64,000 nucleotides of DNA from Macrostomum lignano (taxonomy: Eukaryota). The stretch spans positions 1,116,001 to 1,180,000 of the forward strand of contig NIVC01000094.1 of NCBI GenBank assembly GCA_002269645.1, written 5' to 3'. Under the pieces are notes generated by a model. The model ran no database searches. It was not told the DNA's origin and saw only the letters and a list, made by a program, of their open reading frames with translations. Positions 5,205-34,394 of the stretch are shown piece by piece. The translations under genes were made by a program, and so were the position numbers. The stretch's first letter is position 1, and each line of letters begins with the position of its first letter.

Positions 5205-5441
5205 TGTGACCTTCAATTTGTCTCTTTCCACTATGATGTATGTACATTAGTGTTACTTTAATTGTCAATGATGACTATCTGCATGTGCACCCGTTCGACC
5301 TTAATTGTCTCTTCATGATAAGTATCTACATGTGCACTAGTTTGACCTTAATTGTCTCCCTTATGACTATCGCTGTATGTGCACCAGTTTGACCTTAATT
5401 GTCCCCCTGATGACTATCTGTATGTGCACCAGTTTGACCTT
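5205..5441. repeat. Degenerate 45-bp minisatellite split by the Ingi-like LINE; resumes at 6812-6870
   Basis: Unit accagtttgaccttaattgtccccctgatgactatctgtatgtgc, with copies starting at 5383 and 5428 and continuing at 6812. Confidence 0.8.
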
Positions 5442-6811
5442 GTTGTTGTTGTTGTTAATTCCCGGCCGGGTTAATATCCGGGGGGCGGGTTTGCGCCCCT
5501 ACCGCCTGGAGGAAGTGCAGTGCGCGCGGGCCGTCGTCGTGGAGGATGGCCAGCGTCGGGTTCTCGCCCAGAATTTGTCGTCTGGTCTCGGTCGTGGCGC
5601 GACATTCCAGGAGCAGGTGTTTGAGGTCCTCCGGGGCCTCCCCGCAGGCCGGGCAGGTGGCCTCCGGTTCCAGCCCGATGCGGTGCCGATACTGTCGGAG
5701 TATCGGGCAGTTGCCAGAGCGTAGTTGGGCTAGCAGGACTCTGTCCTTACGGTTCATGGAGGTTTGCTGTTTGGGTCGTCGGCCGTTGATGCAGGTGCGG
5801 TGGGTGCTGCAGTGCTCGTTTGTCTCATACGATCGGATGAAGTCGTTGTGGGCCGTCGCCAGAATGGCAGAGCGTGCGCTGCGGTGATCCAGGGGTGCGT
5901 TGGTCTGATCAAGGGTGGCAGCAGCGCGGGCAGTGGCATCGGCGAGATCGTTGCGACGAAGGTCGCAGTGGCCCGGGATCCATTGCAGGGTCACGTGATG
6001 GCCAGGCGGGAGGCGTCCCAAGATGCGCAGTATGTCGCGGCAGCAAGGGGAGAGCCGCGGGCTTGGGCCGCCTTTGAGGCAGCGGAGCAGGGCCTGGGAG
6101 TCGGTCGCGCAGCGCAGCTCGCGGTTTCCCGGCCACGGCAGTGCGTCAAAAGCTGCTTGGAGGCCGAGCCTAAGCGCGCATTCTTCCGCACGGAAGGACG
6201 AGGTCAGGCTCCCCGCCGGAGCTCTCAGAAAGCGCGTCGACGAACCGCGGGTGTAGAGGACAGCTCCTGCTCCGCCGTTGGTGGTACCCCCTGCTGCCGA
6301 CCCGTCCGTCCAGAGTTCCAGGTCAGCGGGGGGGAGCGACGCTAGGGTCTCCAGCGCCGCGGCCCTGCGAACATGCGGTGGGTCGTCGCGTGAGCACTTA
6401 ACTATGAGGGCGTCTTGGATGTGAAAGCTGGTCGAGGATGACCACGGAGGCACCAGCTCGTTGTCGGTTTCGATTTGGAGCTCAGCCAGTCCGGCTCTGT
6501 GGGTCAGCTCTCTGGCACACCTGCGCCAACATCTGCGGAAGTTGCCGTTTCCGCCGTGAGCGCGGATGCGAGGAGTGACTTCTCTGTCGGCGATGTTGCG
6601 GAGCGGGGTGGCTTGGCGTTGGCGGAGCGTTTTGTCCAGGAGCGTCGCTGCCGCGGCCGCCGCACTGTGAGCCAGGGGTTGGAGTCCGGCTTCGATAAGG
6701 AGCGCGGCTGTTGGCGTAGATTTGCAGCATCCTGAGATGACACGGGCAGCCTCGTTGTGGGCAGATTCCACCAGTTGTCTGCAGGCGTCCGACGCGAAGT
6801 TTAACCAGGCA
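5442..6811 (-). mobile_element. 5'-truncated non-LTR retrotransposon, I/Ingi-like (RT C-terminus + RNase H + CCHC knuckle)
   Basis: Open frame to stop 5455-5457 with RNase H motifs WTDGS, RAEECAL, TDSQ, WIPGH...NDLAD and knuckle CPACGEAPEDLKHLLLEC. (CAA)4-5 tail follows the stop directly. 14-bp TSD accagtttgacctt at 5428-5441 and 6812-6825. Confidence 0.9.
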
Positions 6812-6885
6812 ACCAGTTTGACCTTAATTGTCCCCCCTGATGACTATCTGCATGTGCACCAATTTGACCCCTTGACTCTCTGCAG

Positions 6886-7321
6886 GCTGTGCAGCCGGTT
6901 CTGTTGGACAAGCTGCGACCAACCGAGGACGATGCATCTCTGGACGCCATGCAATCCTACCTGGAGCTTGACAACACTATGACGGAGGTCAGTAGCCGAT
7001 GGCGCGGCTCCCAGCAGCTGCTGGAGTCCTGGCAGGAGCTGCACCGGTGTCACCAGCCGAGGCAGAGACGCAGCCAGCACCTGCAGCACCAGCAGCAGCA
7101 CCAGTCACCGCAGCAGGCCCAGCCAAGCCAGCAGGACGGTCGCTTCACAGTGTGCGAGAAGTGCCATAAAACCCTGTGCGGCTGCTCGCACTGCTCTATG
7201 CACCGATTCACCTGCGGCCTGCACGCTCCGTCGATCAGCTGCTCTTCGTCCGACTCCGATAGGCAAGACGACGACGACGACGACGATGCTGTTGGCGAGG
7301 CAGACGGCGAGGACGACGACG
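6886..7321 (+). CDS. FAM193A: FAM193-family protein, exon 3, 5' part (interrupted by the RTE-like LINE)
   Basis: ctctgcag| acceptor, phase 0. Contains the Cys cluster CEKCHKTLCGCSHCSMHRFTCGL and ends at the left TSD copy. As assembled, the frame stops at TGA 7342-7344 inside the insertion. Confidence 0.85.
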
Positions 7322-9685
7322 GCAGCGGTGTCTTCGTAAATTGATGGTGTATCCTCCGTTGGTGTACGGCTAACCCGGCTCTCGACGCGCACACCTTCCC
7401 GCAGTTCTCGTAATTGCACCTGTACCCGGTCAGCTCCGATTCCACTTCTCCGGCTTCTCTTTCCTGTGCTGTTTCTTCCTCAGTCGTCTCTGCTTTCTTT
7501 CCTTTCTTCCTCTCGCTCTCCTCCAGCGCTCTTTCCCTGATGCGTAACTTCTTTCTCCAAGCCTCTCTATCGGTCACCAGCCTTTCGACCTCCAGCTCAT
7601 CGATTTCTGCCGTGCGCAGTAGCTTTCTCCATACCGAGATGATGGTCTGCCTTCTCTTCCGCGCTTTCTTGATGGTAGTCAGCTTCTTGCTCCAGCCGAG
7701 GACACATCTTTTGACGGTGCTGGTATCCGGGAGTCTGAGTACGTGGCCTAGCCTGCGCCAGTGGGCCGATTCGACTTTGGCGCCGATGCTTCGGACCCGC
7801 AGTTCGTTCCGCACGTCCCACATGTTCACTTTTTTTCTCTCCATTTCTTTTAGCGGTGGTTCGGTCTTGCTGCTCCACACGTACCGATAACGACGGTCCA
7901 TTGCCTGCTGCATCCGCTTAATTTCCGACTTGTGGAAGGGCCGGGCGCCTGCATTGAAGAGCATCGTGCTCTCAACACAGGTCTCTATGATCCTAGCTTG
8001 GGTGCGTTTGCTTAGTCGTGTTTTGCGTAGCATGCATTTGACTCCCGCCCACGCTTTGGCAGCTCTCTGCAGCCGCTGGGCGGTGTCCTGCTTTCTGCCG
8101 ATCCAGGTGCCCAGTATCCGGATGTTCTGACTCTCAGGTGTTCCTAGCTTAGCTCGCTCTTCCTTCTCATCGTTCGTCCGTTCTTCTAGGATTCCGATGG
8201 TCTCGATGACGGTTCTCGTCCCTTGCTCGATTTCCTCGGATCCCCCGACAATAGTGGTGTCGTCAGCGAACAGTACTTCTGTGATTGTTATCTCCGCCGC
8301 TTCTTCGTTGTAACCTCCCATCTTTTTAGGCGGTAAGCATTTGCCCGGTCGGCAAACCCACTTGATTCCGCATTCGGCCCCGGTGTTCTTCGCTTTTTCC
8401 ATGCGCCTCTCTTTTGCTATCCGTATCGCCGTCTGGTGATAGATGTTGAAGAGGATAGGCGATGTGGCGCAGCCTTCTCTCAGCCCGCGTTGTGGGTAAA
8501 ATTCGGAACTTGTCTCTGCGCCGCACCGTACCGTGTACGCGGTGTACTCGTGCAGGTCTGCCAGCTTTTTTATCGTGCGCTCCGGCATGTGCTGATGTTT
8601 CAGCAGTTCCCAAAGAGCCGGCTTGTTTACCCGCGGGTAGGCCTTCTTAAGGTCTAGCAAGACTAGGCTGGTATCCATCGACTCTGCCCATTCTGGGCTC
8701 TCTCTGATCTTCTCGGCGTCCTCGTTCAGTCTGAGTATGATCTGGGTCGCATCCATAGTGGACCGGCCGCTCCGGAAACCGAACTGGTTGTCGTCTAGCA
8801 GACCCATGTTCTCCGTCCATGAGCTCAGCCTCGTCGCCAGTATCCGAGCGAGTATCCTGCTTGCGACTGGTAGGAGGCAGATCCCTCTGAAATTATTGAG
8901 GTTCGTCCGATCGCCTTTCTTGTGGAGTGGCATGATTACACCTACTTTCTGGTCCTCCTCCCAGGTGTCCGCTGGGTTGTTCCAGATGTAGTGCACTACT
9001 TTCCGGACCTCCGCTTGGGCCATTGCGCACGCGCTGGTGATGTAGCGCATTCGGATGCCGTCTAAGCCCGGGGCCCCGTCTTTGATCTTTTTGATTTCGT
9101 CGTCGATCTCTTTGTTTGTTAGTGGTCTGGACAGCCGGTCATTGGCTTCCTCTATCGTAGCCTTGTCTACGCTTGGCTTTGGGGCTGACCTAATTAGATT
9201 GAGCATTTCCTCCTGGTCGTTCTCGAACCGTTGCTCCTGGATCTTTGACAGGTGATAGGTTTACGAAGACACCGCTGCCGTGCCTAAAGTGCAACGCTAC
9301 CTTCTTCACGGAGGCGACAAGAAAAAACCACCAGAAGAGGTGCGGAGGAGAGGAGCGATCGGCGAAAGAAGTCCACTGCGGAGAGTGCAACAAGTGGATA
9401 AGCAAGTCCAACCACGCGCGGCATAGGAAACGGTGCAAGGAGAACGGAAGGAAACCAGAGGCGGGCGCGACACCGGACGAGAGGGCAGAAGAAGCAGCAG
9501 TACCAACGGGGAGAGGCCAGCAGACGACGGGGATTACGGCGCGGATCTACAAGAGCGCCAGAGCTCCGTGCCCGGACTGCGGGAGGATGCTGGCCCGCAC
9601 GAACATGGCCAGACATCGAAAGACCTGCCAGTGAGTCGGCGGCAGAGCGTCCACGCCGCGAGGCGAGAAAAGGACTGAAGAAGAA
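7322..9685. mobile_element. 5'-truncated, 5'-inverted RTE-like LINE (7322-9259 on -, 9260-9685 on +)
   Basis: Minus-strand RT with NNFRGICLL, QFGFRSGRST, DLKKAYPRV, GLREGCATSP and LFADD motifs. Plus-strand 3' end with stop at 9632-9634 and tail gaagaagaa 9677-9685. 25-bp TSD gaggcagacggcgaggacgacgacg at 7297-7321 and 9686-9710. Confidence 0.92.
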
Positions 9686-9710
9686 GAGGCAGACGGCGAG
9701 GACGACGACG

Positions 9711-11363
9711 CGGGCTCAGACGATGAGGACGGGTCGGAAGACGGCTACTACTACGGATACAAGGCCGTCGGGCTGCCCGGCATCGGCTTGTCCGCCCCGC
9801 TGCCGTCCCACCCGATGACCCCGGCCGACTGCGTCCCGGCCAACTCCCGAGTGGCCTCGCCCGCGTCGCCTTCCTCGTCGGCGTCACCTCCGCCGCCGAT
9901 TCCTCCGCCGTCGCTGCCCATGCCGATGCCGCACCTGCCGCAGCCGATTCCGACCTGCGCCGCTGCCGCCGCTGCTTCTGCAAGTCAGCCGCTCGCCGCG
10001 CCAGCGTCTGCCGCTCCTTGCGGCCATCGCTGCTGCGGCGGCGACGGCGTTGGAGTTGACGACGAGGACGACGACGACGATGAAGACGACGAAGAGGATG
10101 ACGACGATGACGGGGGGTCGGGCGACTCGACTTGCCAGCGGGGCGGCGGCAACTCCAAGTACTGCGACTGCTGCTACTGCGAGGTTTTCGGCCACACCGG
10201 AGGCCAGCAGCCGCCCGTGCCGCCGAAATTCTTTGAGAAACGGGAACAGCTGCGGTTAAAACTGCAGAAGAAGAAGGAGAATGGCCAAAAGCAGCAACAG
10301 CAGCCGGATTCGCAGCCAAAAGAGCAGCAGCAGCAGTCAAAGAAGTCGAAGGTGCCAGATCGGACAGCCGACATCGACGAACTGGTGAAGTTCATTGAAG
10401 GCGACTCGTCTAAGAAGCCTTCTAGCGGAGCGGCGAATGGCTCCGTCGCTCCGGCCGCCGACAAGAAGATGACGAAACGCGAGGCCAAGAAGGCGCGCCA
10501 ACGGGCGAAAAAGGCGGAGGCAGCAGCAGCAGCAGCCGCCGCCACCGCCGCTGCTGCACGGTCGCCTTTGCCGTCTCCGCCTTCCTCGCCCCCGCCGGCT
10601 CCTTCAACGCTGTCTGTGGTGAAGCCGCCGACTCCAAAGCCGCAGCCGCCTTTGTCGTCACCGCGAGAGGCGCAGCCAAAGCAGCAGCAACAGCAGCAGG
10701 CCCAGCAGCAGCAGCCGAGGACGCAGCAGCGCGTGCTAGCAGACGCCAAGGCCTCTCAGACTCAAATCCGGACGGCGCAGTCCGCGCCTGCGAAAAGCAG
10801 CCGACCGCAACAGCAGCAGCAACAACAGCAACAGCAGAAGCAGCAACAACAACAGCAGCAGCAACAGCATAGTGCTGTTAATGGAACAAATCGAAGACCT
10901 CTTCAGCAGCAACAGCAGCAGGCGGGTAGCCGCGTGAATCACCGCCAACAGCCTCAGCGGCAGAATGGAACGGCTTCGTACGTTCAGCCAGCTGCTGCTG
11001 CGGCAGCCGCAGCCGCGCCTCCAAATGTCATTCGTTCCGCCGCTGGTGAGCGAAGAAGCCACAGGCAGCAGCAGCAGCTGCAGCAACAACAACAGCAACC
11101 TCGACAGCAGCAACAGCAGCAGCAACAGAGGCAACAACCTGTACAGCTGAAGCAGCACCGTCAGGCTGTCCAGAACCATCAGCAGCAGCAACACCAGAGA
11201 CAGCCGACGCGGCATCAGCCGGCTCAGTCGCAGCACAATCAGCACAGTCTGTTGCCGGAGCAGCAGCAGCACTATCAACAGCACTATCCGCCGCTAAGAA
11301 TTCATCAGCAACATCAGCAGAACTCTCGCGACAGAGAGTCCCGGAGTAAAATGGATGAAATTG
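9711..11363 (+). CDS. FAM193A: FAM193-family protein, exon 3, 3' part
   Basis: In frame with 6886-7321 once the insertion and one TSD are removed (g7321+cg9711-12 = Ala). Contains YCDCCYCEVFGH, REQLRLKLQKKK, IDELVKFIEG and AKKARQRAKK FAM193 motifs, then polyQ. Donor ATTG|GTGAGA (phase 1). Confidence 0.9.
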
Positions 11364-11523
11364 GTGAGAATTTTGGTGTCACTTTGCTGCTTAGAGAAGG
11401 ATTAGAGGAGTGCTGCGGGCACCCGGGCGAGCGGGCGAGAGTTTGAACGCGTTTACCCTATAGTTGCCCTGCCCCCTCTCCCTAGTCAGATTGTTAATGT
11501 TTCCCTCAATTGTACACTTTCAG

Positions 11524-11639: not shown

Positions 11640-12110
11640 TCACCAACAGTGCAGAACCCCCACCCCCACCCCAGCAGTTTCGCCACCAACAATGCAGAAC
11701 CCCCACCCCCACCCCAGCAGTTTCGCCACCAACAGTGCAGAACCCCCACCCCCACCCCAGCAGTTTCGCCACCAACAGTGCAGAACCCCCACCCCCACCC
11801 CAGCAGTTTCGCCACCAACAGTGCAGAACCCCCACCCCCACCCCAGCAGTTTCGCCACCAACAGTGCAGAACCCCCACCCCCACCCCAGCAGTTTCGCCA
11901 CCAACAGTGCAGAACCCCCACCCCCACCCCAGCAGTTTCGCCACCAACAATGCAGAACCCCCACCCCCACCCCAGCAGTTTCGCCACCAACAGTGCAGAA
12001 CCGCCACCCCAGCAGTTTCGCCACCAACAGTGCAGAACCCCCACCCCCACCCCAGCAGTTTCGCCACCAACAGTGCAGAACCCCCACCCCTCCCCCCCGC
12101 AGTTTCGTGC
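11640..12110. repeat. 43-bp minisatellite filling FAM193 intron 4
   Basis: About 11 copies of gcagtttcgccaccaacagtgcagaacccccacccccacccca. Confidence 0.95.
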
Positions 12111-14281: not shown

Positions 14282-14574
14282 CTTTTTAGCTGTTAGACAC
14301 AATAAGCAGATAAATTTGGTAACGTCAAAGTTTGTAAATTCTAGTGCCTACTGGCACTGTAGACCTTAGTAGTATAGTCGCATTTCTTGCTTTCTTTAGG
14401 CTGAGTTGATTATTCGCTGTACTTTGAATACTGTTTCATGTTAGATTTTCAGTATAATGCCTTCTGTAACATGGTATGAAATATATGAACTATCCTTTTC
14501 TAGGCTTTTCTGAGCCTGGTATGATGTCTTCGTGCAATTATTATTTTTTACTATTCAATCATAGACTCATTGGC

Positions 14575-14865
14575 CCGCTGCGCAGACCCACCCCACTCCA
14601 TCTGGCCTGCTGCGCACACCCACCCCACTCCATCTGGCCCGCTGCGCACACCCACCCCACTCCATCTGGCCCGCTGCGCACACCCACCCCACTCCATCTG
14701 GCCCGCTGCGCACACCCACCCCACTCCATCTGGCCCGCTGCGCACACCCACCCCACTCCATCTGGCCCGCTGCGCACACCCACCCCACTCCATCTGGCCC
14801 ACTTCGCACACCCACCCCACTCCATCTGGCCTGCTGCGCACACCCACCTCACTCCGTCTGGGCCG
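14575..14865. repeat. 32-bp minisatellite
   Basis: About 9 copies of catctggcccgctgcgcacacccaccccactc between the small ORF and HPDL. Confidence 0.95.
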
Positions 14866-14927
14866 CTGAACAAAAAACAGTTAGCGGTGCCTCGCTAAAG
14901 AAATTGCTACCAAAAGTCACTCCTCCA

Positions 14928-15385
14928 ATGTTTCCGCCGCTGGCGACTGGGGCGCCGGCCGCCTTATCGCAGCTGTCGCTGCGCGTCCACCACGTGGAGA
15001 TTCACACCAAGCGACTGGGTCGTCTGCTTGATCGCCTGTGCGCCGGCCTGAACTTCCGGCCGACCCTGGTGCACCCAGGCGGAGCGGGACACGGCGCCCT
15101 GGTCACCAAGGGCCGGGCCAGGTTCCTTCTGCGGCCTCTGCTGGGCCCCCAGACCGACAGCGTTGTTGACGTTGCTTTTGAGACGCCGCGCCTCGATCAG
15201 TTCGTTGCCGATCGGCGTCGCGCCGAAGTTGCCGTTGAGGCCGCCTGCGGCGCCGTGCCTGCGTTGCGATTTCAGTCGCCGGCTAGCGGCGGCCTGTGGC
15301 ACACCGTGCTGCAGCAGCGGCACCAGCGGCACCAGATGTCCAGGAGACAGTTTCTGGCGGCCTGCTTTCCCGACTTGGTGCCTGC
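14928..15385 (+). CDS. HPDL: HPDL-like dioxygenase, exon 1
   Basis: ATG 14928; VOC-fold N-terminal motifs HHVEIH...FLL...SVVDVAFE; donor GC|GTGAGT (phase 2). Start codon is tentative. Confidence 0.75.
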
Positions 15386-15517
15386 GTGAGTGATCGGCCT
15401 TGCTGGGGACTTTAAAAAGCTATTAAAAGAGTATAGAAGAAGGCGGGGCCGATTCTGAGGGAATGGCTGACATTGGACTGAAATTCAGCTCAGCGCATTG
15501 AATTTGCCTTACTGCAG

Positions 15518-15676
15518 GCAGCGCACGGAATCAGCTGATGCGGACCAGGAGGGGGAAGATGACGGTGGCGGTGCCTTCATCGATCACGTGGCCCTAGCCT
15601 GCCATGCCAGCGAGTCGGCCCGCATTCTAGCCTGGTATGAGAGCATCTTCCAGCTGCCCCGCTACAGGGTTAACAG
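15518..15676 (+). CDS. HPDL: HPDL-like, exon 2
   Basis: tactgcag| acceptor; IDHVALAC (first metal His) and ILAWYESIF; donor AG|GTATGC. Confidence 0.85.
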
Positions 15677-15684
15677 GTATGCGC

Positions 15685-15725
15685 CTGTCTGTCTGCCTGT
15701 CTGTCTGTCTCTGTCTGTCTGTCTG

Positions 15726-15776
<51 letters not shown>

Positions 15777-15898
15777 GTCTGTCTGTGTCTGTCTGTCTAT
15801 CTGTCTATCCGTCTTTCTGTCTGTCTGTCTGTCGGTCTGTCTGTCTGTCTGTCTGTCTATCCGTCTGTTTGTCTTTCGTCTGTCTGTCTGTCTGTCTA
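15685..15898. repeat. (TCTG)n microsatellite in HPDL intron 2
   Basis: Direct reading of the sequence. Confidence 0.95.
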
Positions 15899-15931
15899 CC
15901 CATGCACATCCGCATTACTCTGCTACTCCAG

Positions 15932-16071
15932 CACAGAAACGGAGGGTGGCTTCACCGTTCGCTACAAGGACTCCGGCATGAACTTGAAAGCCATTGCATC
16001 GAACGAGCCGCCGGACGCCAGGGACCACTACACCGGACTGAAGTTCGTGTTCGCCGAATCGCTGAACTCTG
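15932..16071 (+). CDS. HPDL: HPDL-like, exon 3
   Basis: ctccag| acceptor; G(M)NLKA...LKFVFAESL; donor G|GTCAGT (phase 1). Confidence 0.85.
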
Positions 16072-16192
16072 GTCAGTTTTTGTCGAGAATAATTTTTCCA
16101 CTTTTACATACTGGATATTTATCTAGTAAGTTCCCGATGGAATAAGTTTGAACAAGTTTGCTGGCGTGCATAATATCTATAAATGAGATTTT

Positions 16193-16312
16193 AAGGGTCA
16201 AAATGGCACAACACAGAGTCAAAATGGCACAACACAGAGTCAAAATGGCACAACTCAGAGTCAAAATGGCACAGCTCAGAATCAAAGTGACACAGATCAG
16301 GGTCAAAATGGC

Positions 16313-16345
<33 letters not shown>

Positions 16346-16820
16346 TAAACAGACAGACAAAATGGCACATCTGAGTCAAAATGGCACAGCTCAGAGTCAA
16401 AATGGCACAGCTCAGAGTCAAAATGGCATAACTCAGAGTCAAAATGGCACATCTCAGAGGCAAAATGGCACACCTCATAGTCAAAGTGACACAGATCAGG
16501 GTCAAAATGGCACAGCTCAAAGTCAAAATGGCACACCAGTGTCAAAGTGCCACAGATCAGGGTCAAAATGGCACACCAGAGTCAAAGTGACACAGATCAG
16601 GGTCAAAATGGCACACCAGAGTCAAAGTGCCACAGATCAGGGTCAAAATGGCACAACTCAGAGTCAAAATGGCACATCTCAGAGGCAAAATGGCACACCT
16701 CATAGTCAAAGTGACACAGATCAGGGTCAAAATGGCACAGCTCAAAGTCAAAATGGCACACCAGAGTCAAAGTGACACAGATCAGGGTCAAAATGGCACA
16801 GCTCAAAGTCAAAATGGCAC
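16193..16820. repeat. 21-bp minisatellite with embedded (ACAG)n in HPDL intron 3
   Basis: Unit gtcaaaatggcacagctcaga with gtcaaagtgacacagatcagg variants; (ACAG)n at 16313-16359. Confidence 0.9.
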
Positions 16821-16853
16821 CGCTTAGAATGAAAATGACACTGTCCCTCACAG

Positions 16854-17007
16854 GCCCCAACCAGATCAACACATTCCTGCGCGAGCACGGAGGCTCGGGT
16901 GTGCAGCACGTGGCCATTCATTTGGACAATTTTGTGCAGCAGGTGGCGGCCTACAGGCAACGCGGCGTGGAGTTCATGGACCCCCGGCTGCCTACTACAG
17001 CAAAGAG
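16854..17007 (+). CDS. HPDL: HPDL-like, exon 4 (1 nt short in C-run 16981-16985)
   Basis: NQINTFLREHGGSGVQHVAI (second metal His). One extra C is needed to read DPPAAYYSKE and reach the phase-0 donor GAG|GTATGC. Confidence 0.85.
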
Positions 17008-17192
17008 GTATGCTGGGTAGAAGACCATGCAGAAAAAATCGATAAATTAAAATTAAAATTGATAATTTATTAACTCGACTACTCTACTCGTAGTAGAAAA
17101 ATATGGAAAATACCTTTAATTTTCGCTTTGCTAACGATAGCGATATCAGTAAAAATTGAATACGAGCGTGCTGGATGTTCCCAACACTGCAG

Positions 17193-17320
17193 ATCGGCAA
17201 GGTGCAGCAGATTGCCGAATCCGGGCTCGATCTGCAGTCGGTGCGAGATAATCAAATTCTGGTGGACTGCGAGGCCGACGGAGGTGGCGGCGACGACTGC
17301 CCTGCTGACAGCAGAGACAG
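17193..17320 (+). CDS. HPDL: HPDL-like, exon 5
   Basis: cactgcag| acceptor; IGKVQQIAESGLDLQSVRDNQILVD; donor AG|GTGAGG (phase 2). Confidence 0.85.
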
Positions 17321-17387
17321 GTGAGGTGCACCTTATAGCCGGTGAGATACTACTAGGAGAGGTATTTGTTGTAGAATAGGGATTATC

Positions 17388-17790
17388 TTCTGTAGGGTAG
17401 GGAGGGATTATCTGCTGTAGGGTAGGGAGGGATTATCTGCTGTAGGGTAGGGAGGGATTATCTGCTGTAGGGTAGGGAGGGATTATCTGCTGTAGGGTAG
17501 GGAGGGATTAACTGCTGTAGGATAGGGAGGGATTAACTGCTGTAGAGTAGGGAGGGATTATCTGCTGTAGGGTAGGGAGGGATTATCTGCTGTAGGGTAG
17601 GGAGGGATTATCTGCTGTAGGGTAGGGAGGGATTATCTGCTGTAGGGTAGGGAGGGATTATCTGCTGTAGGGTAGGGAGGGATTATCTGCTGTAGGGTAG
17701 GGAGGGATTATCTGCTGTAGAGTAGGGATTATCTGCTGTAGAGTAGGGATTATCTGCTGTAGAGTAGGGATTATCTGCTGTAGAGCAGGG
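17388..17790. repeat. 25-bp minisatellite in HPDL intron 5
   Basis: Unit gggattatctgctgtagggtaggga, period confirmed at 17404/17429/17454. Confidence 0.95.
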
Positions 17791-17839
17791 ATGTGTTACC
17801 ATAGCAAAGGTAACTCCGCTAATTCCACTGCGGCCGTAG

Positions 17840-17996
17840 GTACCTGATGCAGGTGTTCACGAAGCCGCTGCTCAGCGAGGACACTTTCTTCCTGGAGCTC
17901 ATCAGCCGAGTTGGCGCTCGCGGTTTCGGCGCTGGCAACATATCGGCGCTGTGGCGCGCGGTGGAAGCCCACATGCTCAGCAGGGGGCAGCTGTGA
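17840..17996 (+). CDS. HPDL: HPDL-like, last exon
   Basis: [42 protein letters not shown] is the HPDL-type C-terminal motif with the metal Glu; TGA at 17994-17996. Corrected protein is 398 aa. Confidence 0.92.
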
Positions 17997-18554
17997 TTGC
18001 TGGAACTTGTGGGAGGAGAAGGGAACGGAGGAAGAACTCTGCTTCTAGGAGAAGATTTAATTGAATATTCTTTTGTGCTTCAGTTAATCTGACACTGTTC
18101 GCGCACAGGCTGATCCGCAGGGCATTTCCTAGCATGTTTTGCAACTAGCTGAATTTTTATTTTTCTTTGCCATAATTAACATTTTTAACAACCAAAAAGT
18201 GCTACTGATTCACTGGCTTTGTTTTTTCTCAAGTAGTATGTACCGCGTGCTCGCAAGCTGGTACAATCTCAGCGCATACACACACGGCTAGCCTTTACCT
18301 GATTATTCAGAGTTTCTGCCTTCTCTGTCCCCGCGTGTCTGCCTATGTTTAACCCATGTTTAAGCTTAATAATCAGCGGCTGCATCTCCGGTCTCGGGCG
18401 CCCGTCTGGCCCGCTGCATTCAGAATGGAATTCGAGCCTTCTGCTTTTGATACGAAACTCTGCATTCTGCTTTGGGACTGACGCGCTTTGTGCTTCTTTT
18501 GGGGGGGCTTCAAGATTCAACACACGTTATTATCGATATTTGTAGTCGGTTAAG

Positions 18555-20320
18555 ATCCTCAGTTGCTGGGCCAGCCTCCCAGATCCTCAGTGTCTGAGCC
18601 AGCCTCCCAGATCCTCAGTTGCTGGGCCAGCCTTCCAGATCCTCAGTGTCTGGGCCAGCCTCCCAGATCCTCAGTTGCTGGGCCAGCCTCCCAGATCCTC
18701 AGTGTCTGAGCCAGCCTCCCAGATCCTCAGTTACTGGGCCAGCCTCCCAGATCCTCAGTTGCTGGCCAGCCTCCCAGATCCTCAGTGTCTGGCCAGCCTC
18801 CCAGATCCTCAGTTGCTGGGCCAGCCTCCCAGATCCTCAGTGTCTGAGCCAGCCTCCCAGATCCTCAGTTACTGGGCCAGCCTCCCAGATCCTCAGTTGC
18901 TGGCCAGCCTCCCAGATCCTCAGTTGCTGTGCCGCCCTTTTAGATCCTCAGTTGCTGGGCCAGCCTCCCAGATCCTCAGTCGCTGGGCCAGCCTCCCAGA
19001 TCCTCAGTTGCTGTGCCGCCCTTTCAGATCCTCAGTTGCTGGGCCAGCCTCCCAGATCCTCAGTTGCTGGGCCAGCCTCCCAGATCCTCAGTCGCTGGGC
19101 CAGCCTCCCAGATCCTCAGTTGCTGGCCGCCTTTCAGATCCTCAGTTGCTGGCCAGCCTCAGATCCTCAGTTGCTGGGCCAGCCTCCCAGATCCTCAGTG
19201 CTGGGCCAGCCTCCCAGATCCTCAGTTGCTGGCCGCCCTTTCAGATCCTCAGTTGCTGGGCCAGCCTCCCAGATCCTCAGTGTCTGGGCCAGCCTCCCAG
19301 ATCCTCAGTTGCTGAGCCAGCCTCCCAGATCCTCAGTGTCTGGCCGCCTCCCAGATCCTCAGTGTCTGGCCAGCCTCCCAGATCCTCAGTGTCTGGGCCA
19401 GCCTCCCAGATCCTCAGTGTCTGAGCCAGCCTCCCAGATCCTCAGTGTCTGGGCCAGCGGCCTCCCAGATCCTCAGTGTCTGGGCCAGCGGCCTCCCAGA
19501 TCCTCAGTGTCTGGGCCAGCGGCCTCCCAGATCCTCAGTGTCTGAGCCAGCCTCCCAGATCCTCAGTGTCTGGGCCAGCCTCCCAGATCCTCAGTGTCTA
19601 GGCCAGCGGCCTCCCAGATCCTCAGTGTCTGAGTGCCGCCCAGATCCTCAGTGTCTGGGTCAGCCTCAGCCTCCCAGATCCTCAGTGTCTGGGCCAGCCT
19701 CCCAGATCCTCAGTGTCTGGGCCAGCCTCCCAGATCCTCAGTGTCTGAGTCAGCCTCCCAGATCCTCAGTGTCTGGGTCAGCCTCAGCCTCCCAGATCCT
19801 CAGTGTCTGAGCCAGCCTCCCAGATCCTCAGTGTCTGAGCCAGCCTCCCAGATCCTCAGTGTCTGGGCCGGCCTCCCAGATCCTCATGTGCTGTGCCGCC
19901 CTTTCAGATGCTCAGTTGCTGGGCCAGCCTCCCAGATCCTCAGTGTCTGGGCCAGCCTCCCAGATCCTCAGTTGCTGGGCCAGCCTCCCAGATCCTCAGT
20001 GTCTGGGCCAGCCTCCCAGATCCTCAGTGTCTGAGCCAGCCTCCCAGATCCTCAGTGTCTGGGCCAGCCTCCCAGATCCTCAGTGTCTGGGCCAGCGGCC
20101 TCCCAGATCCTCAGTGTCTGAGCCAGCCTCCCAGATCCTCAGTGTCTGGCCGCCTCCCAGATCCTCAGTGTCTGAGCCAGCCTCCCAGATCCTCAGTGTC
20201 TGGGCCGGCCTCCCAGATCCTCAGTGTCTGAGCCAGCCTCCCAGATCCTCAGTGTCTGGGCCGGCCTCCCAGATCCTCAGTGTCTGGGCCAGCGGCCTCC
20301 CAGATCCTCAGTTGCTGGCC
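18555..20320. repeat. ~28-bp minisatellite between the convergent HPDL and GPCR genes
   Basis: Core agatcctcagtgtctgggccagcctccc, ~60 variant copies. Confidence 0.95.
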
Positions 20321-20883: not shown

Positions 20884-21496
20884 CTGGGCGGGGATGGTTG
20901 AATCAATTAAATGAGTTGACAATAGGATTTTGCAATTGAAAATAATCAGATATTCTCAGAAGGGCTGTGGGGCACCATGGCGTACTCGTACTTTCTAATC
21001 ATAGTATTAATTATTATTTATTTATATTTAGATACTGAAAAAAAGAGCGGCACACACTGCCAATGGAGCTTGTAGTCTGGCGGCCGTAGACAGCAGAGGG
21101 GGGCGCGTTGACGCTCTCTCCACTATTCAGTAGTTAGGACAGTAGCATAATTTGCATGTGCAAAGATAAATTCTCACCAGAGCGAAAATCCCAAGTAGAG
21201 GAAAAGAAATTAATGCGAATACGCGAGTTTGTACTGTAAATGCCTGTTGGTAAAGCTGGACTTTCGTAAGACTAAACTCTATAATTATTACTATCATATT
21301 AAGGATCCGGACTCATTAAAAAAACGATTCAATAAATTGTAAAATTTAATCAATTATTTCGTCAATTGTGTACTACTTACACATCTGGTCCTAACAGTAG
21401 CGCACAAGTAAATTTGGGAAGTGACCAATCTAGCTATTGCCTGTGGTCTATGCGGTAGTTTAAAGCACACTTAAGTAGTCCGTGTATCCGACTCAC

Positions 21497-22312
21497 CCGA
21501 CATTTACGCCGCCGCAGTACCAGCGCCACTTTGACCGACATGACCAGATTAACAATCAGCGTTGCTATGGCGACTAGCAAAGACGCGTCGCCGATCAGCA
21601 GCAGGCGGAACAGCATGCTGACGTAGTAGGAGGCGCTGGGCGGCTCGAACAGCACGCCGCAAAGAATCCGGGTGGCGTTGCGTGGCCCGCCAGCCGGCCA
21701 GAACGTCACCTGTGTCCGGCCGAACATGGCCAGGCTGCTTAGCGACAGCACCATGGACACGCCGGTAGCGGCGGACACCGCGGCCACCGCCCGGTTGCGA
21801 CCGACGCCGCGCATCCGCAGCGGCGCCAGCACCGACAGGCAGCGGTCCAGCGCGTAGGCCAACAGCACCAGCGCCGTCGAGCCCGACAGGAATGACTGGG
21901 CGAACCGGGTGGCCCGGCAGCCGACGTCGCCGCCAGCGTTCAGCAGAAGGAATCCGTGCCGGCCGCCGGTGGCCCAGGGGAGGCCCTTGGCCAGGTGGAA
22001 CCAGCCGAGGCCCCACACCAGCGAGTGCAGCGAGTCCCAGACGCACAGGGTAGCCAGGTAGACTGAGAATCGCGTGGACAGGCGCATCCGGGCGGCGAAC
22101 ACGTGGAGCAGCAGGCCGTTGTTGACCAGGGTGAGGGTCAGCATCACCGGTAGCGCGTAGGCGGACATCACGCCCAGGATTGTGGCCGCGGTGCACCTGG
22201 CGGCGCCGGCCTCCGGTCGGCACTCGTCCAGTAGGTCGTGCAAGGAGTCCACGTAGTCGTAGTCGTCCGGCAAGCTGTTTGCTACTGCTGAGGGTGCTCC
22301 CGCGTTTTGCAT
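21497..22312 (-). CDS. Orphan rhodopsin-class GPCR, exon 1 (TM1-TM5)
   Basis: ATG 22312; TM1 LVNNGLLL, TM2 YLATLCVWD, TM3 C...ALDRCLSV (DRY-like). The KGLPWATGG loop resembles flatworm orphan Rho-L/PROF-type receptors (from recall). Donor CGG|GTGAGT (phase 0). Confidence 0.88.
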
Positions 22313-25043: not shown

Positions 25044-26993
25044 TCACGTGCCGCCAAGCACTCGTTTCTGATTGTACGCTGAGCTGGAGCACCTGGCGCT
25101 GTGCAGAGAGCTCGGGCCGCCTGATCGCGCCGAGTCCGGCTGCTGCTGTTGCTGCTGTTGTTGCTGCTGCTGCTGCTGCTGCGAATGCGGCTGTGGATAG
25201 GACTGAGAGTGCGACTGAGCCTGATGCCTCGGCGACGTGGCCGGAGCTGGCGGCGGCGGCACCGGCGGGCCGTCCATCAGGCTGACTGGTGGCAGGAACA
25301 CGCCGGACGAGTACACCTTGCGGATCTGCTCCTGCCGCTGTCTGGCCGACCGCCCGGCGCCGGGGCGCGACGTTTTCGGACGAGCCGGCGCTGGATTTGG
25401 CGCCGCCGGCGGTGGTTGCGGCAGCGGGCCGGAGCGGCGCTGGCCGCCGTGCGAGTTCGAGTGAGTCGAGGAGCCGCCGAGGCCCAACGTCGGGCTGATC
25501 TGCTTGCCAGCTGCCGGGCCGCGCGAGGTGGCCGGGCGCGACTGCGAGCGGTGGCTGGAGAGCGGCTGTTGCTGCTGGTCCTGCGCCAGCGCGTCGTTCA
25601 TTCGCCTGGCCAGCCGCAGAGTCTCGTCAGCTTGGCGCTGCACCTGCTGGTACAGGTCGCGCGTCTCCCGCAGCATCGCTTTGAACTCGGACTCCCGCTC
25701 GCGCTCCTTGAACTTCTTCGACTTCGGACTGCCGGATGAGCCGCCACCGCCAGTTCTTGCTGTCGACTGCCTGATGGAGGAGATGCTGCTGCCTGTCAGG
25801 TCATGCGAGCTGGACTTTGCTGATTTTGCGTCCTTGTCGGCCTCCTTTGTCTTCTCCTTGTCCTTCTCTTTGTTCTTGTCTTTGTTCTTGTCTTTGTTCT
25901 TGTCTTTGTCCTTGTCTGTGTCTTTGTTCTTATCCTTGTCTTTGTCTTTCTCCTCACTTTTGCTATTTTCTGCTTTCGCTTCCTCATCGGCCTCCAGGCC
26001 TGCTGCGGTCTCCGGCTCGGACGGCGGCGGCGCTGGCGAATCGTCGTCGGCGTCAAAATCGTCGCCCAGGCTGTACTCGGACATGCAGTAGCGCCTGTAC
26101 TCCTCCAGCAGCATCTTCAGCATGATCTTGTCCGACACGGTGCCCTCGTAGATCCGGTTGCGCTTGTTGTTGTGCGAGTGCCTAGAGATCGCCCTGACCC
26201 GCTCGTACTCGCGCACGCTGCGCTGGATCTGCTTGTCAGGCGGCGGCTTCTGCGGCTGCTGCTGCTGCGGCCTGATCCGCATCGCCTGCACCGGGTTTTT
26301 GCCCCGCTTCTCCCAGAAGAATGGCACCTTGTGCGGCTTGTTGAGCCGGACCTTCGGCTGCTGCTGAGCCTGCAGCTGCGGCCTTGGCGACCGCTCGGTC
26401 TGGCTGTCTGTCGACATTGCCGCAGTTGAAGACGATGCCTTCTCAGCCTCGGCACCGCTGACGCCTTCCCTGTCCGTTTCAGGCGGCGGCGGCGGCGGCT
26501 GCTGCTTTAAGTCGGTGGTCGACGTTGTCATCACCGAGCAGGGCGGCTTCTTAGCGGGCGATCCGCTCACCTCGGTGATTGTTGCCGCCTCCTTTGTCTC
26601 CGGTATGGGCGGGGGTGGCGGCTGCTTCTGCTGTTGTTGCTGTTGTTGCTGGGCTTCCGAAAGCAGATTGGCACCGACGCTCTCCCGACGGGACAGCTGC
26701 CGGGACGGCCGACGGGACTGCGACCGCGACGTCGCCCCCTCTTCAGCCTCCTGCTCCGGCAGCACCTCCTGCTCATCATCGTAGTCCGCCACGTTTATCT
26801 CCTCGTAGTCGGCGCTGCCGCTGCCCTGCGCCTTCAGCTGCTCCTCTCGCTCCCGCCGGGCGATCATCTCCTCGGCCCGTCTAATCGCGTCCGCGTACGG
26901 CTGCGCGTTCACGCCTGACGACCCGGCCGCTGCCGATCCGGCCGCCGCTCCGCCACCGCTGACGCTTTTCCGTCGGCTGGCGAGACCGCCTGA

Positions 26994-27024
<31 letters not shown>

Positions 27025-29180
27025 ATTGCCGTCGTCAATCGCAGCGTCTGCCGCTCCTCCGGCCGGTCGGCCAGGCCCAGCTCGTGCGCGTACTGGCCGC
27101 CGTAGCGCCTGATGAACTCCTTGCACTCGCTGCTGCTGGTGAGGTCCAGCGCCGTCACCGGGTTGCCCTGCTCCGACACCGAGGCCAGGTTGACGTCCGC
27201 CCCGTAGCGCAGCACCGCGTTGCACATCTGTGTCTCGTTCTTGTAGGCGGCGATGTGCACGCAGGCCTGCTCGCTGACGTTCTTCGTGTCCAGGAGGGCC
27301 TTACTGTCCGCGGCCAGGTGCTTCACGGTCTCCAGGTGGCCCATGTGCACTGCCTCATGGATCGGCAGGTCGCCGATGGAGTTGCCCACCCAGAGGTTCG
27401 CACCGAGCTCGTTGAGCAGCTTCAGCATGATAATGAGATCCTTGGCGGCGGCGCAGTGGGCCGCAGTCCGGCCCTTCTTGTCTTGGTGGTCGATGTCCGC
27501 CCCGCACCTGACCAGAGCACGCACGCACTCCTCCTGGTTGAGCGTCACCGCGTAGAACAGCGGCGAGCAGTCGTTCTTGTCGCCGACGTTGATGTCGATG
27601 TCAACAGTGTCTTTTGCCATAAGCTCCACGATGTTGGCGTGGCCTCGGCTGGCCGCGCAGTGCAGCACCGTCAGTCCCGCCTTGTCGCCCAGAGCCGGCT
27701 TGGCGCCCTTCTTCAACAGCAGCTCGCAGGCGCGCTTGGCGCCGACGCTGCCGGCCCACATCAGCGGGCTGCGCTTCTCCGCGTCCAGGCAGTCGACGCG
27801 GCTGCTCCGGCCGAGCAGCATCTCCAGGATTCGCACCGGCCGGTCGTCGGTCGGCTGCGCGGTGCCGCACACCTGCGCCGCGTAGTGCAGCGGGTAGGCG
27901 CCGAAGATGTCCGGCTGCATCACCTTGGCCTTGTGGTCCAGCAGCGCTTTGAGCGAGTCGGCCTGGCTGCAGACCACCGCCCAGTGCACCGAGGAGTGCC
28001 GCTCGTTGTCCACGGCGTCGACCTCGGCGCCGCTCTGCAGCAGCAGGTGGATCAGCTTGACGTTGCCAGCGATGGTGGCCAGGTGCAGCGGGCTGTACCC
28101 GTCCGCGTCCTTCTTCGTGACGACCTCCGGCCGCTTGGCCAGCAGCAGCTCGGCGCAGGCCGTCTCCTCGCTCTCGGCGCAGTAGTGCAGCGCGTTCTTG
28201 CCGCCGTCGTCCACCTCAGCGGGATCGGAGCCGGCGTCAATCAGGCTCTGCGCCGTCTCGAACTCGCCGGCCTGGCAGGCCACCATCAGCGGCGTGGTCG
28301 GGTGGAACTCCTTGCTGGTGTCGGAGGGCGGCGGCTGCGCCCTGGCGTAGACCCGCACCATCTTTTTGAAGGTGCCGTTTGGATGGTCGGCCGCCCGGGC
28401 CTCCACCGACTTGTCTTTGTAGTCGACAATGTCAGGCCGGGCGCCCTTGCGCAGCAGCAACTCGAAGATGTCCGTCCGGTTGACGTACAGCGCGTAGTGC
28501 AGCGCAGTCCGGCGGTATTTGTTGTCCTCCTGCGTGTTGACCTGGACGCCGAACTCAAGCAACTGGTGCACGAACTCGTACGAGGCGATCTGCACCGCGT
28601 ATATCAGCGGGGTGGCGCCGCTGAGGCGCGAGGCGACGTCCAGCGCCTGCCGGCCGTGCGGTTCCGACCTGGCGATGACGTCGAGGCTCTCGGCGCAGCC
28701 CATCCGGATGGCCAGATGCACAGCCGACTGACCCTCCTCGTCCTGCAGCGCCGGATTGGCGCCCGCGTCTAGCGCGGCCTGCAGCAGCGACACGGGCGTC
28801 TGCGTGAGGATGCACCAGTGCAGCAGGGTCCGGCCCGCGCTGTCCTGGTGGCCGAGGCTGGCGCCCTTCCTGGCCAGCCAGCGCACGCACTGGCAGTAGT
28901 CATCGATGGGCATCTCCTGGGTCTTGCCGAGGGTGGCCTCGAGCTTCTTGTAGCTCTGGACCAGGATGATCGGCAGCGAGAAGCCGTCGCTGTACACGTG
29001 GCCGAACCGGAAATCAGCTCGATTGTCGTCTACCAGGTACTTGAACCGGTGCAGGTTGCCGGTCTCCAGGAGGCTGCGGGCCTCCTCCATCAGGTCCGGT
29101 GGCGGCAGACTGGGCGTCAAGGTGTGGCTGCTTCCCGACTCGCTGGTGTACTCGGTCACCGGCGTCAGAAGTCTCGACAT
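25044..29180 (-). CDS. Intronless ankyrin-repeat protein (~1378 aa), ~15-16 ANK repeats plus low-complexity/coiled-coil tail
   Basis: Single ORF with first ATG at 29180. Repeated G.(T/S)PLH.A...G....V..LL..GA motifs in two blocks; the second block is inversin-like in style, but orthology is not assigned. Confidence 0.9.
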
Positions 29181-31535
29181 TGCGATGCTCTGTGGCTGTG
29201 CGGTGCTGTTTAAATCTGGAGGGCTGGCTCCGGTTGCCAGTGACAACAGATAGGAAGGCTGAGGTGCTGCTTCAATAATTGACCACCGGGGCCTGTTTCA
29301 AGAGGGTAGAGAGAGGCGCACAAGTTTTCTGTAGTTGTAAACGACTGCCTTTCTCCCACTGTGCGTTGTTTTTGAGCTGGGAGGTAAATAATGGATGGGA
29401 TCAGGACTGCGGGCTGGCCGGCCTGTGCGCTCGCACCTCCATTGGCCTCGCCTGGGGGGATTTAAAATGCGTAGTTGCCAGCCGCGATGGGGAAGAGACG
29501 GAGGCTGAGAGCGCTGCGCAGATTCTTGAGACGAGAAATGGTGCTTAGTGGTGTCTCTTCCGCTCTCTCCTCTCTCTCTTGGATTCTCTGTGCTCATCTG
29601 CCCTACCGTCGCATTGCGCCAGAGCCTTTCTTAAAGGCTCAAAAAGCGCCCCGGCGACCAGCCAACCCCCTGCCGTCTCCCCCTCTCTGCCCAGCTGCTC
29701 AGTTGCGCCCAGCTGTGTGTCAAAACTCTGCATAGAGAGAGAGAAGCTGGTTTTGACAGCCGCAGAGCTGAGTTCTGATGGCGATGTTGAAAAGGCGTTT
29801 GAGACGACAAGAGGCTGCGCTGGCGCCTCTACCTCGCACAGGGCGGAGCTGCTGCACACTGCCTCCCCCCTGCACACTCCGCTGGGCTGGGACAGAGAAA
29901 GCATGAGTAGTTAGAGAGAGAGAGAGAGTAAGGCGAAGTGGCCGCTCTTTGCCGTTACTAGCTGAGTAGCTGCCGTTTTTACTGCCTCACTAATGCTCCA
30001 GCGCCGTGTTCTCTCCCTGTGCACAACTCTCATTTTTGGGCTACTCATCACCGTCTCACTTCTTTTCTCGGCCAATGGTCTCTTAGAATCGGTGTCAAAT
30101 TACCGAATTTTTCCTACTGTATGTACATACAGCTAATATTCGAACTGTCTGCCCTTGGGCAAACTGTGTGAAATGAAATGACTTCAATATCAAACTATCA
30201 ATACTGCCGGCCGGACCGTCTGCGCACTTCTGCTGCACTTTGCCGGCTTGCCGGGCGGCCTCCCCAGCTCAGCCCGACCCGCCTTGGCAACACGGGAAAT
30301 GGCGCGGGAAATGGCGCTCTATTTTTGGTGCTCCGGCTCGCACAGCTCAGACTAGCGGCTCACACCAACTTGGTAGTCATGACAACCGATTCTCCAGTGC
30401 CTCCAGCATCCTCCCTCCCGCATCTCCTCCCCGCTTTACAACTAAGAGTTGTAGAGGTGAATCTCAAGGTCTTAAATTTTCTACTTCCAATAGTCTATGG
30501 CGCGACAATGAATAAAAAATTAATTTGCGACATGTTCTCATTAATAAAAATGACTTGCGTGTCAGAATTTTGAGTGCTACTCGTACAGCCAGGGACGGTC
30601 ATTTTATTGACTTTAATGACCAGGCAGGAAAATGGCAAATCGGGAAGCCTTGTGCAGTTGGCAGTGTGTTTGCCTCGGTCCCGGGCAAACACTGCAGCTG
30701 AGGTGCTGGGAGGTGTGGCTAATAAAAAGTTCTGCTCATCGTGTGGCTCCACAGGGGCTGCCTTGAGCGATCGGATATGAGATGAGGCACGCCAGCTTCC
30801 GGGAAAGGCAGCTCAACGAAAGACGGGATCCTCGGCTCTGTTTCTCTTCTCTCTTTACTCTGCTCAACTCTACTCGTAGCTACCTCGGGCTTGCTACCTG
30901 TCTCTCCCAGCCTCCTATTCGAGAGGCCTCATCTCGACAGCGCCTCAGCCAGCATCTGCCGGACCTTCGCCTGGCTACATTTTCTCAGCATGCAGCGGCC
31001 ACTCAGCGACAGTGGGGGGGGGGTGGGGGTCGGGGGACACGCGAGCTGCGAAATCCTGCCAAGCCCCAGCCAGATCCCCGTCTTCCCATCCTGCATCCCC
31101 ACCAACCTCCCTGCCTGCGATCCATCCCGAGAGAAGCTGAAGGAGGCGCTCCCGGAGCTGCGCTTGGGGACGCGAGCGAGAGGGAGGGAGAGAGGATGGA
31201 GCGGGATGACTCGGATGCGGGGGTGGGACACGAGCTGGGAGCGAGAGCAAGAGAAAGGACAGGGGAGTTGAGCGATGGGGCGCCATAGGATGCTGGACTA
31301 AATCAACCCATCCCCCACCGCCACCGCCGCCCCGTCTTCCCAGGCCCCGCAGCTGCCACCGACGGTGCAGCAGAGCCGAGCTCAGCAGGCAGCAGAGCAC
31401 ACTCTCTACAGAGCAAATTTATCTTTAAATAAGCGACCGCGAGAAAAGCAGGAAGCCCGAGATACTTTGGAAGGCTCCCCCCACGTCTGAAATTTGACGA
31501 AAAATTTTTCCCGCATCGACTCGGCCCAGCCAGCC

Positions 31536-33560: not shown

Positions 33561-33929
33561 GCTGAGAACAGAGATCTGAATAGCGAGCTGTGTTTTAAAT
33601 TCATATTCCAAATAAATTAAAGTTTTTTGGCCACCCAGCAAGAGGCGTATTGTCATCAGTTTTGACGGTTATATTAATAAAATGCACAAATAAACAACTC
33701 TGTTTTTCCTTACTAATCATTCAATGAATTAATGAATGAACGAAATATTTTTAAGATTACTGAAGGCGAGATTGAAGAGCCAATCAGAAAGCAGCGAGGG
33801 AGAGAGAGAGAATAACAAGACTGAACTGGACAGAGATAGAGAGAAAGCAGAGTAAACAAAGACGAGTGAAGGTGAACTGAGAAATGACTAAGAATTGGCG
33901 CGCTTGCATGTCCCAGCGCTGGTTATTGC

Positions 33930-34192: not shown

Positions 34193-34394
34193 GCCAGGGA
34201 CAGACTTGCATAGCAGCAACAGGGATGCTTTGGGGCTCTGGAGAGGAGGGAACAGGATGGGGGGGTTGCAGAGTGCGAGACAAGGCGCAACTTAGGGGCT
34301 GAGATTGGGCAAGCGACCAGCTTTTCTCAAGAACTGGCAGAGGGGAGCGAATCCGAAAGGCGAAAGAAGTGTTAGAGGGAGAGTAAGGGAGAAA

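Follow-up and report, generated by a model that had tools for sequence, protein, structure and literature searches.

The 5' inversion of mammalian L1, a long interspersed nuclear element (LINE), is reportedly the outcome of twin priming, as described by Ostertag and Kazazian in 2001. Twin-priming 5' inversion concerns about one fifth of human L1 insertions (~18 to 22% according to PMC12016303) and underlies most small human inversions. Overlap of the two cDNAs is found in 42% of human germline L1 inversions, with a median of 12 bp (quartiles, 4 to 17) and a distribution which resembles that of the length of the target-site duplication (TSD) (PMC12016303). According to Yamaguchi, Kajikawa, and Okada (2014), L1 5' inversions accompany TSDs of 10 to 20 bp, a long overhang being argued to be necessary for priming on the RNA, and ZfL2-1, an element with 5-bp TSDs, showed no inversions (PMC4245944). 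This comparative retrotransposition study recorded 5' inversion only for L1 in human cells and in a single event of Nimb-2_DR, and its authors proposed that 5' inversion depends on both the LINE and the host species (PMC4245944). Here, we analyzed a stretch of 64,000 nucleotides of the flatworm Macrostomum lignano (assembly GCA_002269645.1, contig NIVC01000094.1, positions 1,116,001 to 1,180,000, forward strand), which we refer to as the window and whose own numbering is used throughout. A LINE copy found at 7322-9685 in the window consists of an inverted 5' arm and a direct 3' arm, and we deem it likely that it records a single insertion of a young non-L1 LINE, of the type carrying an apurinic/apyrimidinic endonuclease (APE), into a poly-Asp-coding host exon, resolved by twin priming. 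Although the mechanism itself is not new, the element lineage and the host are, as is its occurrence as a natural event.

In the open literature, the single Nimb-2_DR insert is the only non-L1 5' inversion that we found; earlier reports are possible, and subscription journals were mostly outside the coverage. The other papers listed for twin priming deal with mammalian L1 or with L1-mobilized RNAs, barring two on R2, of which one names twin priming only as an L1 phenomenon and the other just cites the original paper. This agrees with a first-pass annotation of the window, made from the sequence by itself, which had supposed such cases to be few outside L1.

Layout of the insertion and identity of the element

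The features of the locus, including the reverse transcriptase (RT) domain and the untranslated region (UTR) of the element and the host exon it interrupts, are the following.

6886-7321, plus strand: host exon, upstream part, with poly-Gln, Cys-rich, and poly-Asp stretches and a putative splice acceptor AG at 6884-6885
7297-7321, plus strand: 5' TSD copy, GAGGCAGACGGCGAGGACGACGACG, of which the last 3 nt, ACG (7319-7321), are complementary to the element RNA too
7322-9259, minus strand: inverted 5' arm, 645 uninterrupted codons, starting shortly upstream of the RT domain and reaching the linker past zinc finger 1 (...HHQFTKTPL)
7322-7340, minus strand: inverted copy of the segment shared by the two arms, 19 nt, or 22 nt counting ACG 7319-7321
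7347-7424, minus strand: zinc finger 1 (C2H2 type, YRCNYENCGKVCASRAGLAVHQRRIH), a weak zf-C2H2 match at residues 595-620, at the RNA-3' end of the arm
8106-8924, minus strand: RT domain (Pfam RVT_1), including the FADD motif, E=7.3e-22, residues 95-367 of the protein starting at 9206
9260-9685, plus strand: direct 3' arm, starting with FTKTPLP and containing zinc fingers 2 to 4, the stop codon, the 3' UTR, and the tail
9260-9281, plus strand: direct copy of the shared segment, with the inversion junction at 9259/9260 and at most 2 nt of possible filler
9686-9710, plus strand: 3' TSD copy, directly behind the GAA tail
9711-11446, plus strand: host exon, downstream part, in frame with 6886-7321 after removal of the insert and one TSD copy

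The insert between the TSD copies measures 2,364 bp and is made up of the 1,938-bp minus-strand arm followed by the 426-bp plus-strand arm. One TSD pair encloses both arms, and no further long repeat lies around either of them. As the first-pass annotation had claimed, the 25-bp TSD is perfect: 7297-7321 and 9686-9710 match at 25 of 25 positions, without extension on either side, and the 25-mer has two sites in the window even when 3 mismatches are allowed (0.00 expected in 100 dinucleotide shuffles). Shuffle tests served as the null model for this 25-mer and for the 22-mer of the shared segment, since whole-window exact-repeat counts are uninformative in a window filled with minisatellites. 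Both ends of the TSD are ambiguous, the GA at its left end being assignable to the GAA tail and the ACG at its right end being common to the element. Since both could belong to the element, the real target duplication is 20 to 25 bp long.

The same annotation had pointed to a segment of 21 to 22 nt, encoding FTKTPLP, that occurs inverted at 7319-7340 and direct at 9260-9281, and to the overlap of the last 3 nt of its inverted copy with the end of the TSD. Both statements hold. Within the window, the 22-mer TTTACGAAGACACCGCTGCCGT is confined to these two sites (0.00 expected from the shuffles), with 100% complementarity, and ACG 7319-7321 forms the final 3 bases of both the inverted 22-mer and the 5' TSD, beyond which the pairing does not go. 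The duplication within the element thus comprises 19 nt unambiguously and 22 nt with the shared ACG, and microhomology of at least 3 nt at the internal priming site has a chance probability of 1/64.

The two arms differ in how they end. The translation of the direct arm begins with FTKTPLPCLKC... and contains three more CX2C...H...C motifs before the stop codon at 9632-9634, which is followed by a 42-nt UTR (9635-9676) and by (GAA)3 at 9677-9685 (tail, GAAGAAGAA). The length, stop codon, and (GAA)3 previously ascribed to this 426-bp segment are correct, while the UTR, put at ~45 nt, is the 42 nt measured here. The inverted arm, recognized before as a 1.94-kb minus-strand RT segment at 7322-9259 and found here to contain 1,938 bp and 645 open codons with an RVT_1 match (E=7e-22), lacks a tail as well as its own TSD and terminates within the open reading frame (ORF). 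Both arms are ORFs and both repeats are perfect, which indicates that the insertion event is recent.

When 7322-9710 is deleted, 6886-7321 and 9711-11446 fuse in one frame (...DDDDDDDAVGEADGEDDDAGSDDEDGSEDGYYYGYK...) of ~720 open codons, and the reconstructed pre-insertion site reads ...GGCGAGGACGACGACG, followed by CGGGCTC.... The matched in-frame flanks, together with the perfect duplication at the element ends, argue for one real insertion and not for a misjoin or for two insertions. The insert brings the host frame to an end at TGA 7342-7344, and the interrupted gene copy is therefore probably truncated, a null or truncating mutation being the probable consequence, and loss of the host gene may be tolerated through another allele or a homeologue. 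The exon contains a CDCCYCEVFGH...REQLR motif which is common to proteins carrying Pfam FAM193_C; an empty-site orthologue of the host gene was sought in the protein collection, where short motif matches were all that was found.

The partial protein reconstituted from the two arms (746 aa) has many relatives in the protein collection at 40 to 47% identity, which are 1,200 to 1,300 aa long and consist of an N-terminal endonuclease, RT, and C-terminal zinc fingers. A search of this collection for the family itself gave LINE matches of 46% identity at best, and the proteins encoded in the window were not found there. In a tblastn comparison with the relative P0001 (1,201 aa), 9254->7347 corresponds to aa 441-1078 and 9263-9625 to aa 1083-1193, and four other full-length relatives yield the same pattern of consecutive, nonoverlapping arms. 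The 7322 end of the inverted arm falls at about aa 1078-1085 of the relatives and its 9259 end at about aa 440. The junction lies in the linker that connects fingers 1 and 2, which is single copy in each aligned relative, and the Cys/His columns of the C-terminal fingers are invariant across the 6 aligned sequences. The first-pass annotation had reasoned that two independent insertions would be indicated if full-length copies carried FTKTPLP twice; in the relatives, which are only 41 to 47% identical, the linker occurs once. Judged by this alignment, the two arms are adjacent pieces of one element, whose uninverted order would be RT...HHQFTKTPLPCLKC...tail. Homology of the inverted arm to the relatives (YHLSKI.. 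versus ..GHLEKI..) reaches within 2 nt of 9259, which leaves essentially no filler at the inner junction. Searches with blastn and tblastn found the family nowhere else in the 64-kb window. Three truncated relatives, P0005, P0036, and P0042, were considered as inversion candidates and rejected, being collinear copies with frameshifts.

The 3' end and the protein both speak to the identity of the element. Among the 11 relatives with a readable 3' end, 10 end with ...GGCGA[CT]AAAA.AG or similar, followed by (GAA)n, and the eleventh, L006, has the same 3' motif with a (GATAC)n tail. The window copy ends like its relatives, with GGCGAGAAAAGGACT(GAA)3, and a poly(A) tail is found neither in this copy nor in any of the 11. 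Two full-length relatives are ~4.03 to 4.05 kb long with a single long ORF each. In the Pfam search, the element protein matched RVT_1 and zf-C2H2 only, and among PDB entries only distant matches to L1 and R2 were obtained; P0001 aligned with human L1 ORF2p at E=1e-10 and 43 bits, R2 proteins scoring about equally. Behind the RT domain, the window copy and every aligned relative have four fingers of the C2H2/CCHC type. The GAA-repeat tail, the conserved 3' end, and the weak similarity to L1 ORF2p thus clearly place the element outside L1, and the earlier designation "non-L1" is borne out by the tail and the 43-bit match.

The earlier designation "RTE-like" can be kept only in part. The short 3' UTR, the microsatellite tail, and the single ORF agree with it, but the four C-terminal fingers and the 1,200- to 1,300-aa ORFs of the relatives do not. 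Canonical RTE elements are not known to have a C-terminal finger domain, and the zinc fingers therefore argue against a canonical RTE, so that the assignment would be only loosely true. As to the N-terminal end, the full-length relatives P0007, P0009, and P0013 begin with a 2A-like motif of the ribosome-skipping kind (..IEPNPGP or ..VHPNPGP), placed ahead of the endonuclease, and the closest relative, P0001, has its endonuclease right at the N terminus and a 5' UTR of 383 nt.

Probable twin priming and rival explanations

Twin priming produces a top strand in which the 5' TSD is followed by the reverse complement of RNA positions a to b, then by c to the end of the RNA, the tail, and the 3' TSD, with b near c; here, b is 19 to 22 nt downstream of c. 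Simpler models do not predict such a geometry. One TSD pair, a tailed sense arm, a tailless inverted arm, collinear relatives, and the restored host ORF together support twin priming, which the first-pass annotation had already recognized in this geometry, and each prediction testable here (TSD pair, tail, abutting end, microhomology, and collinearity) held.

The event may have proceeded as follows. The endonuclease would nick the bottom strand where the TSD was to begin on its left side, and the ...CTC-3' end would pair with the RNA at its (GAA)n tail and prime cDNA 1, which covers the last 426 nt of the element, as seen at 9260-9685. The top strand would be cut 20 to 25 nt downstream, an unusually long stagger for the lineage, freeing a 3' overhang ...GACGACG-3'. 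The ACG of this overhang is complementary to the RNA CGU at the position of 9279-9281, exactly where the inverted arm begins, and would have served there as the second primer. A second reverse transcription would then have run 1,938 nt toward the RNA 5' end (7322-9259), and cDNA 1 passed the internal priming site by 19 to 22 nt, as the small duplication shows. Finally, the 3' ends of the cDNAs would be joined at 9259/9260, the gaps filled, and the target duplicated. Within this scheme, we infer in which order the nicks were made, that a single RNA and not two served as template, and that the junction at 9259/9260 arose by end joining. The insert is dead on arrival, ~1.7 kb of its 5' end being gone, endonuclease included. 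Its TSD of 20 to 25 bp is the longest observed in the lineage (versus 10, 10, ~13, and 17 bp in four collinear relatives), which fits the published tie of long TSDs and overhangs to 5' inversion (PMC4245944).

Some points weigh against this reading. The evidence comes from one locus in one assembly, and collinearity was deduced from relatives of 41 to 47% identity and not from a full-length copy of the family itself, such a copy also being required for scoring microhomology at the inner junction. To obtain the 19- to 22-nt overlap, either the second primer must undergo strand displacement or another template RNA must take part. Moreover, a both-strand screen of 36 loci of relatives (4 long ENA contigs and 32 JGI/ENA metagenome contigs, most of them 1 to 4.5 kb) revealed no 5' inversion, a result which has little bearing on the frequency of inversion as the contigs are mostly short.

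Such another template RNA leads to an alternative, dual priming with an internal start, in which the top-strand overhang primes on a different RNA of the same family with an identical product; dual priming has been put forward for L1 (PMC2837659). Copying of the same 19 to 22 nt into both cDNAs is easiest to picture if the two reverse transcriptions do not collide on one template. However, the arms abut at almost one RNA position, which is expected for a single held RNA and would be a coincidence for two, and similarly sized overlaps are frequent among L1 inversions attributed to one RNA (PMC12016303). Since the 22 shared nucleotides are identical, the one-RNA and two-RNA variants look alike in the sequence; we hold dual priming to be unlikely. 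A later inversion would also lead to the same final arrangement, if an ordinary 5'-truncated insertion of ~2.34 kb had been followed by the flipping of its 5' 1.9 kb via a staggered break. Inversions arising from staggered breaks leave inverted duplications at their breakpoints, as in Drosophila inversions. Still, one breakpoint would have had to fall by chance within 0 to 3 nt of the 5' junction (odds on the order of 1 in 1,000 given an insert of 2.3 kb), coincidence would have to account for the ACG microhomology at the edge of the TSD, and neither the element nor the TSDs bear any sign of age, all of which renders this course of events highly improbable.

The remaining explanations dispense with a single inverted insertion. 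Tandem repeats are extremely abundant in the window and make it hard to assemble, and the inverted join might accordingly stem from misassembly or from a chimeric read. Yet the two flanks come from one host exon and are in frame, and a perfect duplication of 25 bp sits precisely at the ends of the element; at the breakpoints, 3 nt of microhomology and 22 nt of overlap are present instead of the kilobase-scale overlaps that assemblers use; the window holds no second copy of the family to be misjoined; and palindromic reads duplicate one segment in both directions rather than placing adjacent segments in opposite ones. An assembly artifact is therefore very unlikely in our opinion. One might also suspect two independent insertions from one family, adjacent to each other and oppositely oriented, in a neighborhood which does receive insertions, with fragments of two LINE families lying within 1 kb of each other (5441-6806 and 7322-9685). 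This is effectively refuted by the minus-strand arm, which has neither a second TSD pair nor the 3' UTR and tail with which every insertion made through target-primed reverse transcription starts; the sole TSD pair encloses both arms, and these are exactly consecutive in the element. We give this possibility next to no credence. Twin priming on one RNA thus remains the explanation that we favor.

Target sites and surroundings

With regard to the target, the copy in the window landed in a (GAC)n stretch coding for poly-Asp, and the lineage seems to prefer triplet repeats of the GAY/GAT type. A GAT-rich triplet array directly follows the tail in seven of the nine relatives with a visible 3' flank, and each TSD measured has G, in most cases GA, as its start, in agreement with the (GAA)n tail. 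The loci considered were 7267-7321 and 9686-9760 in the window, 6640-6800 in L001, 5780-5810 in L002, 6270-6295 in L003, and the 3' flanks of L005, L006, L007, and L013. If this preference is true, acidic low-complexity exons would be preferred landing sites and at particular risk.

A second LINE fragment, belonging to another family, lies at 5441-6806 on the minus strand. It is 5' truncated and uninverted, encodes RNase H and zf-RVT domains (ORF 5455-6771), has a (CAA)n tail that appears as (TTG)5 at 5441-5457 and a TSD of ~13 to 14 bp (ACCAGTTTGACCTT), and was inserted into an intronic 47-nt tandem array located a short way upstream of the interrupted exon. A 43-nt array (11641-12107) is located just downstream of that exon. 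Overall, more than 20 minisatellite arrays with periods of 13 to 46 nt, some of them longer than 2 kb, occur in the window; besides 11641-12107, the array regions are 14571-20312, 33044-37183, 37724-50558, 54109-58118, and 61390-64000, with related arrays in opposite orientations around 37.7 to 42.3 kb. Several of the arrays yield long spurious ORFs, such as 46922-49342 (24-nt period).

Nearby host genes appear as long, intron-poor ORFs, listed here with a protein kinase A (PKA) subunit and a G protein-coupled receptor (GPCR) among them.

21434-22312, minus strand: rhodopsin-family GPCR fragment
25044-29246, minus strand: ankyrin-repeat protein, 1,400 codons
31494-32762, plus strand: PKA type II regulatory subunit ORF, 422 codons, 96% identical to a Macrostomum lignano protein

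The matches of the PKA subunit next in rank are M. lignano proteins too, which assigns the window to M. lignano or a close relative. Its identity of 96%, and not ~100%, to the M. lignano protein suggests that the gene is a homeologue or that the line is divergent or belongs to a sibling species.

Comparison with known LINEs

The nearest likenesses in architecture are found among two groups of LINEs. RTE-related retroposons feature a short UTR, a microsatellite tail, and a TSD opening with the first base of the tail, and the TSDs of RTE elements are mostly 7 to 15 bp long (PMC6007223). With RTE LINEs and RTE-related short interspersed nuclear elements (BovB and plant RTE; PMC6007223), the present element shares the very short 3' UTR, the microsatellite-like tail, and the fit of the first TSD base to the tail repeat, the TSD starting with G or GA after (GAA)n; its collinear relatives, in turn, have TSDs of 10 to 17 bp and a single long ORF containing APE and RT. 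Unlike RTE, these relatives have ORFs of 1,200 to 1,300 aa with four fingers after the RT domain and, in some, an N-terminal 2A-like peptide. Ingi/Vingi LINEs (PMC3708506) resemble the element in their single ORF, in their C-terminal C2H2-type fingers, and in the 2A-like N terminus of some relatives, and no RNase H domain was detected in the element, as reported for Vingi. This likeness concerns architecture only; 2A peptides occur in the CR1, L2, and Rex1 clades as well.

As for the inversion, the Nimb-2_DR insert obtained in chicken DT40 cells (PMC4245944) is likewise a 5' inversion of a non-L1 APE-type LINE, and PMC4245944 ties 5' inversion to longer TSDs and overhangs such as those found here. 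That case is one event of an engineered zebrafish element in heterologous cells, whereas the present one is a natural insertion of another lineage in its own host.

Mammalian L1 inversions have in common with our locus one TSD pair, a tailed sense 3' arm, an inverted 5' arm whose RNA-3' end lies at the 5' TSD, microhomology at the priming site, a slight cDNA overlap similar in size to the TSD, a long TSD, and a truncated, dead product. They differ in the element, which here ends in (GAA)n where L1 has poly(A) and shows a conserved 3'-end motif, four C-terminal fingers of the C2H2/CCHC type, an apparently single ORF in the relatives, and only 43 bits of similarity to L1 ORF2p, and they differ in the setting, which here is a flatworm host and a GAC triplet-repeat coding stretch rather than TTTT/A. 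The cDNA overlap at our locus (19 to 22 nt) nearly equals the TSD in length (20 to 25 nt), the same unexplained likeness being reported for human L1 (PMC12016303). The long TSD and the TSD-sized overlap hence match two quantitative patterns of L1.

More tentatively, and with some doubt on our part, twin priming may not be a peculiarity of L1 or of mammals and may be general for APE-type LINEs with a long 3' overhang, and the GAA-tailed zinc-finger lineage, whose apparent targets are GAY triplet repeats and with them poly-Asp coding sequence, may be active in Macrostomum, with recurrent twin priming. If true, this would provide a nonmammalian system for measuring how 5' inversion depends on TSD length and how the overlap is linked to the TSD. 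A clean natural case in a distant LINE lineage and in a flatworm argues against the restriction of 5' inversion by LINE and host that was put forward on the basis of L1 and Nimb-2_DR (PMC4245944).

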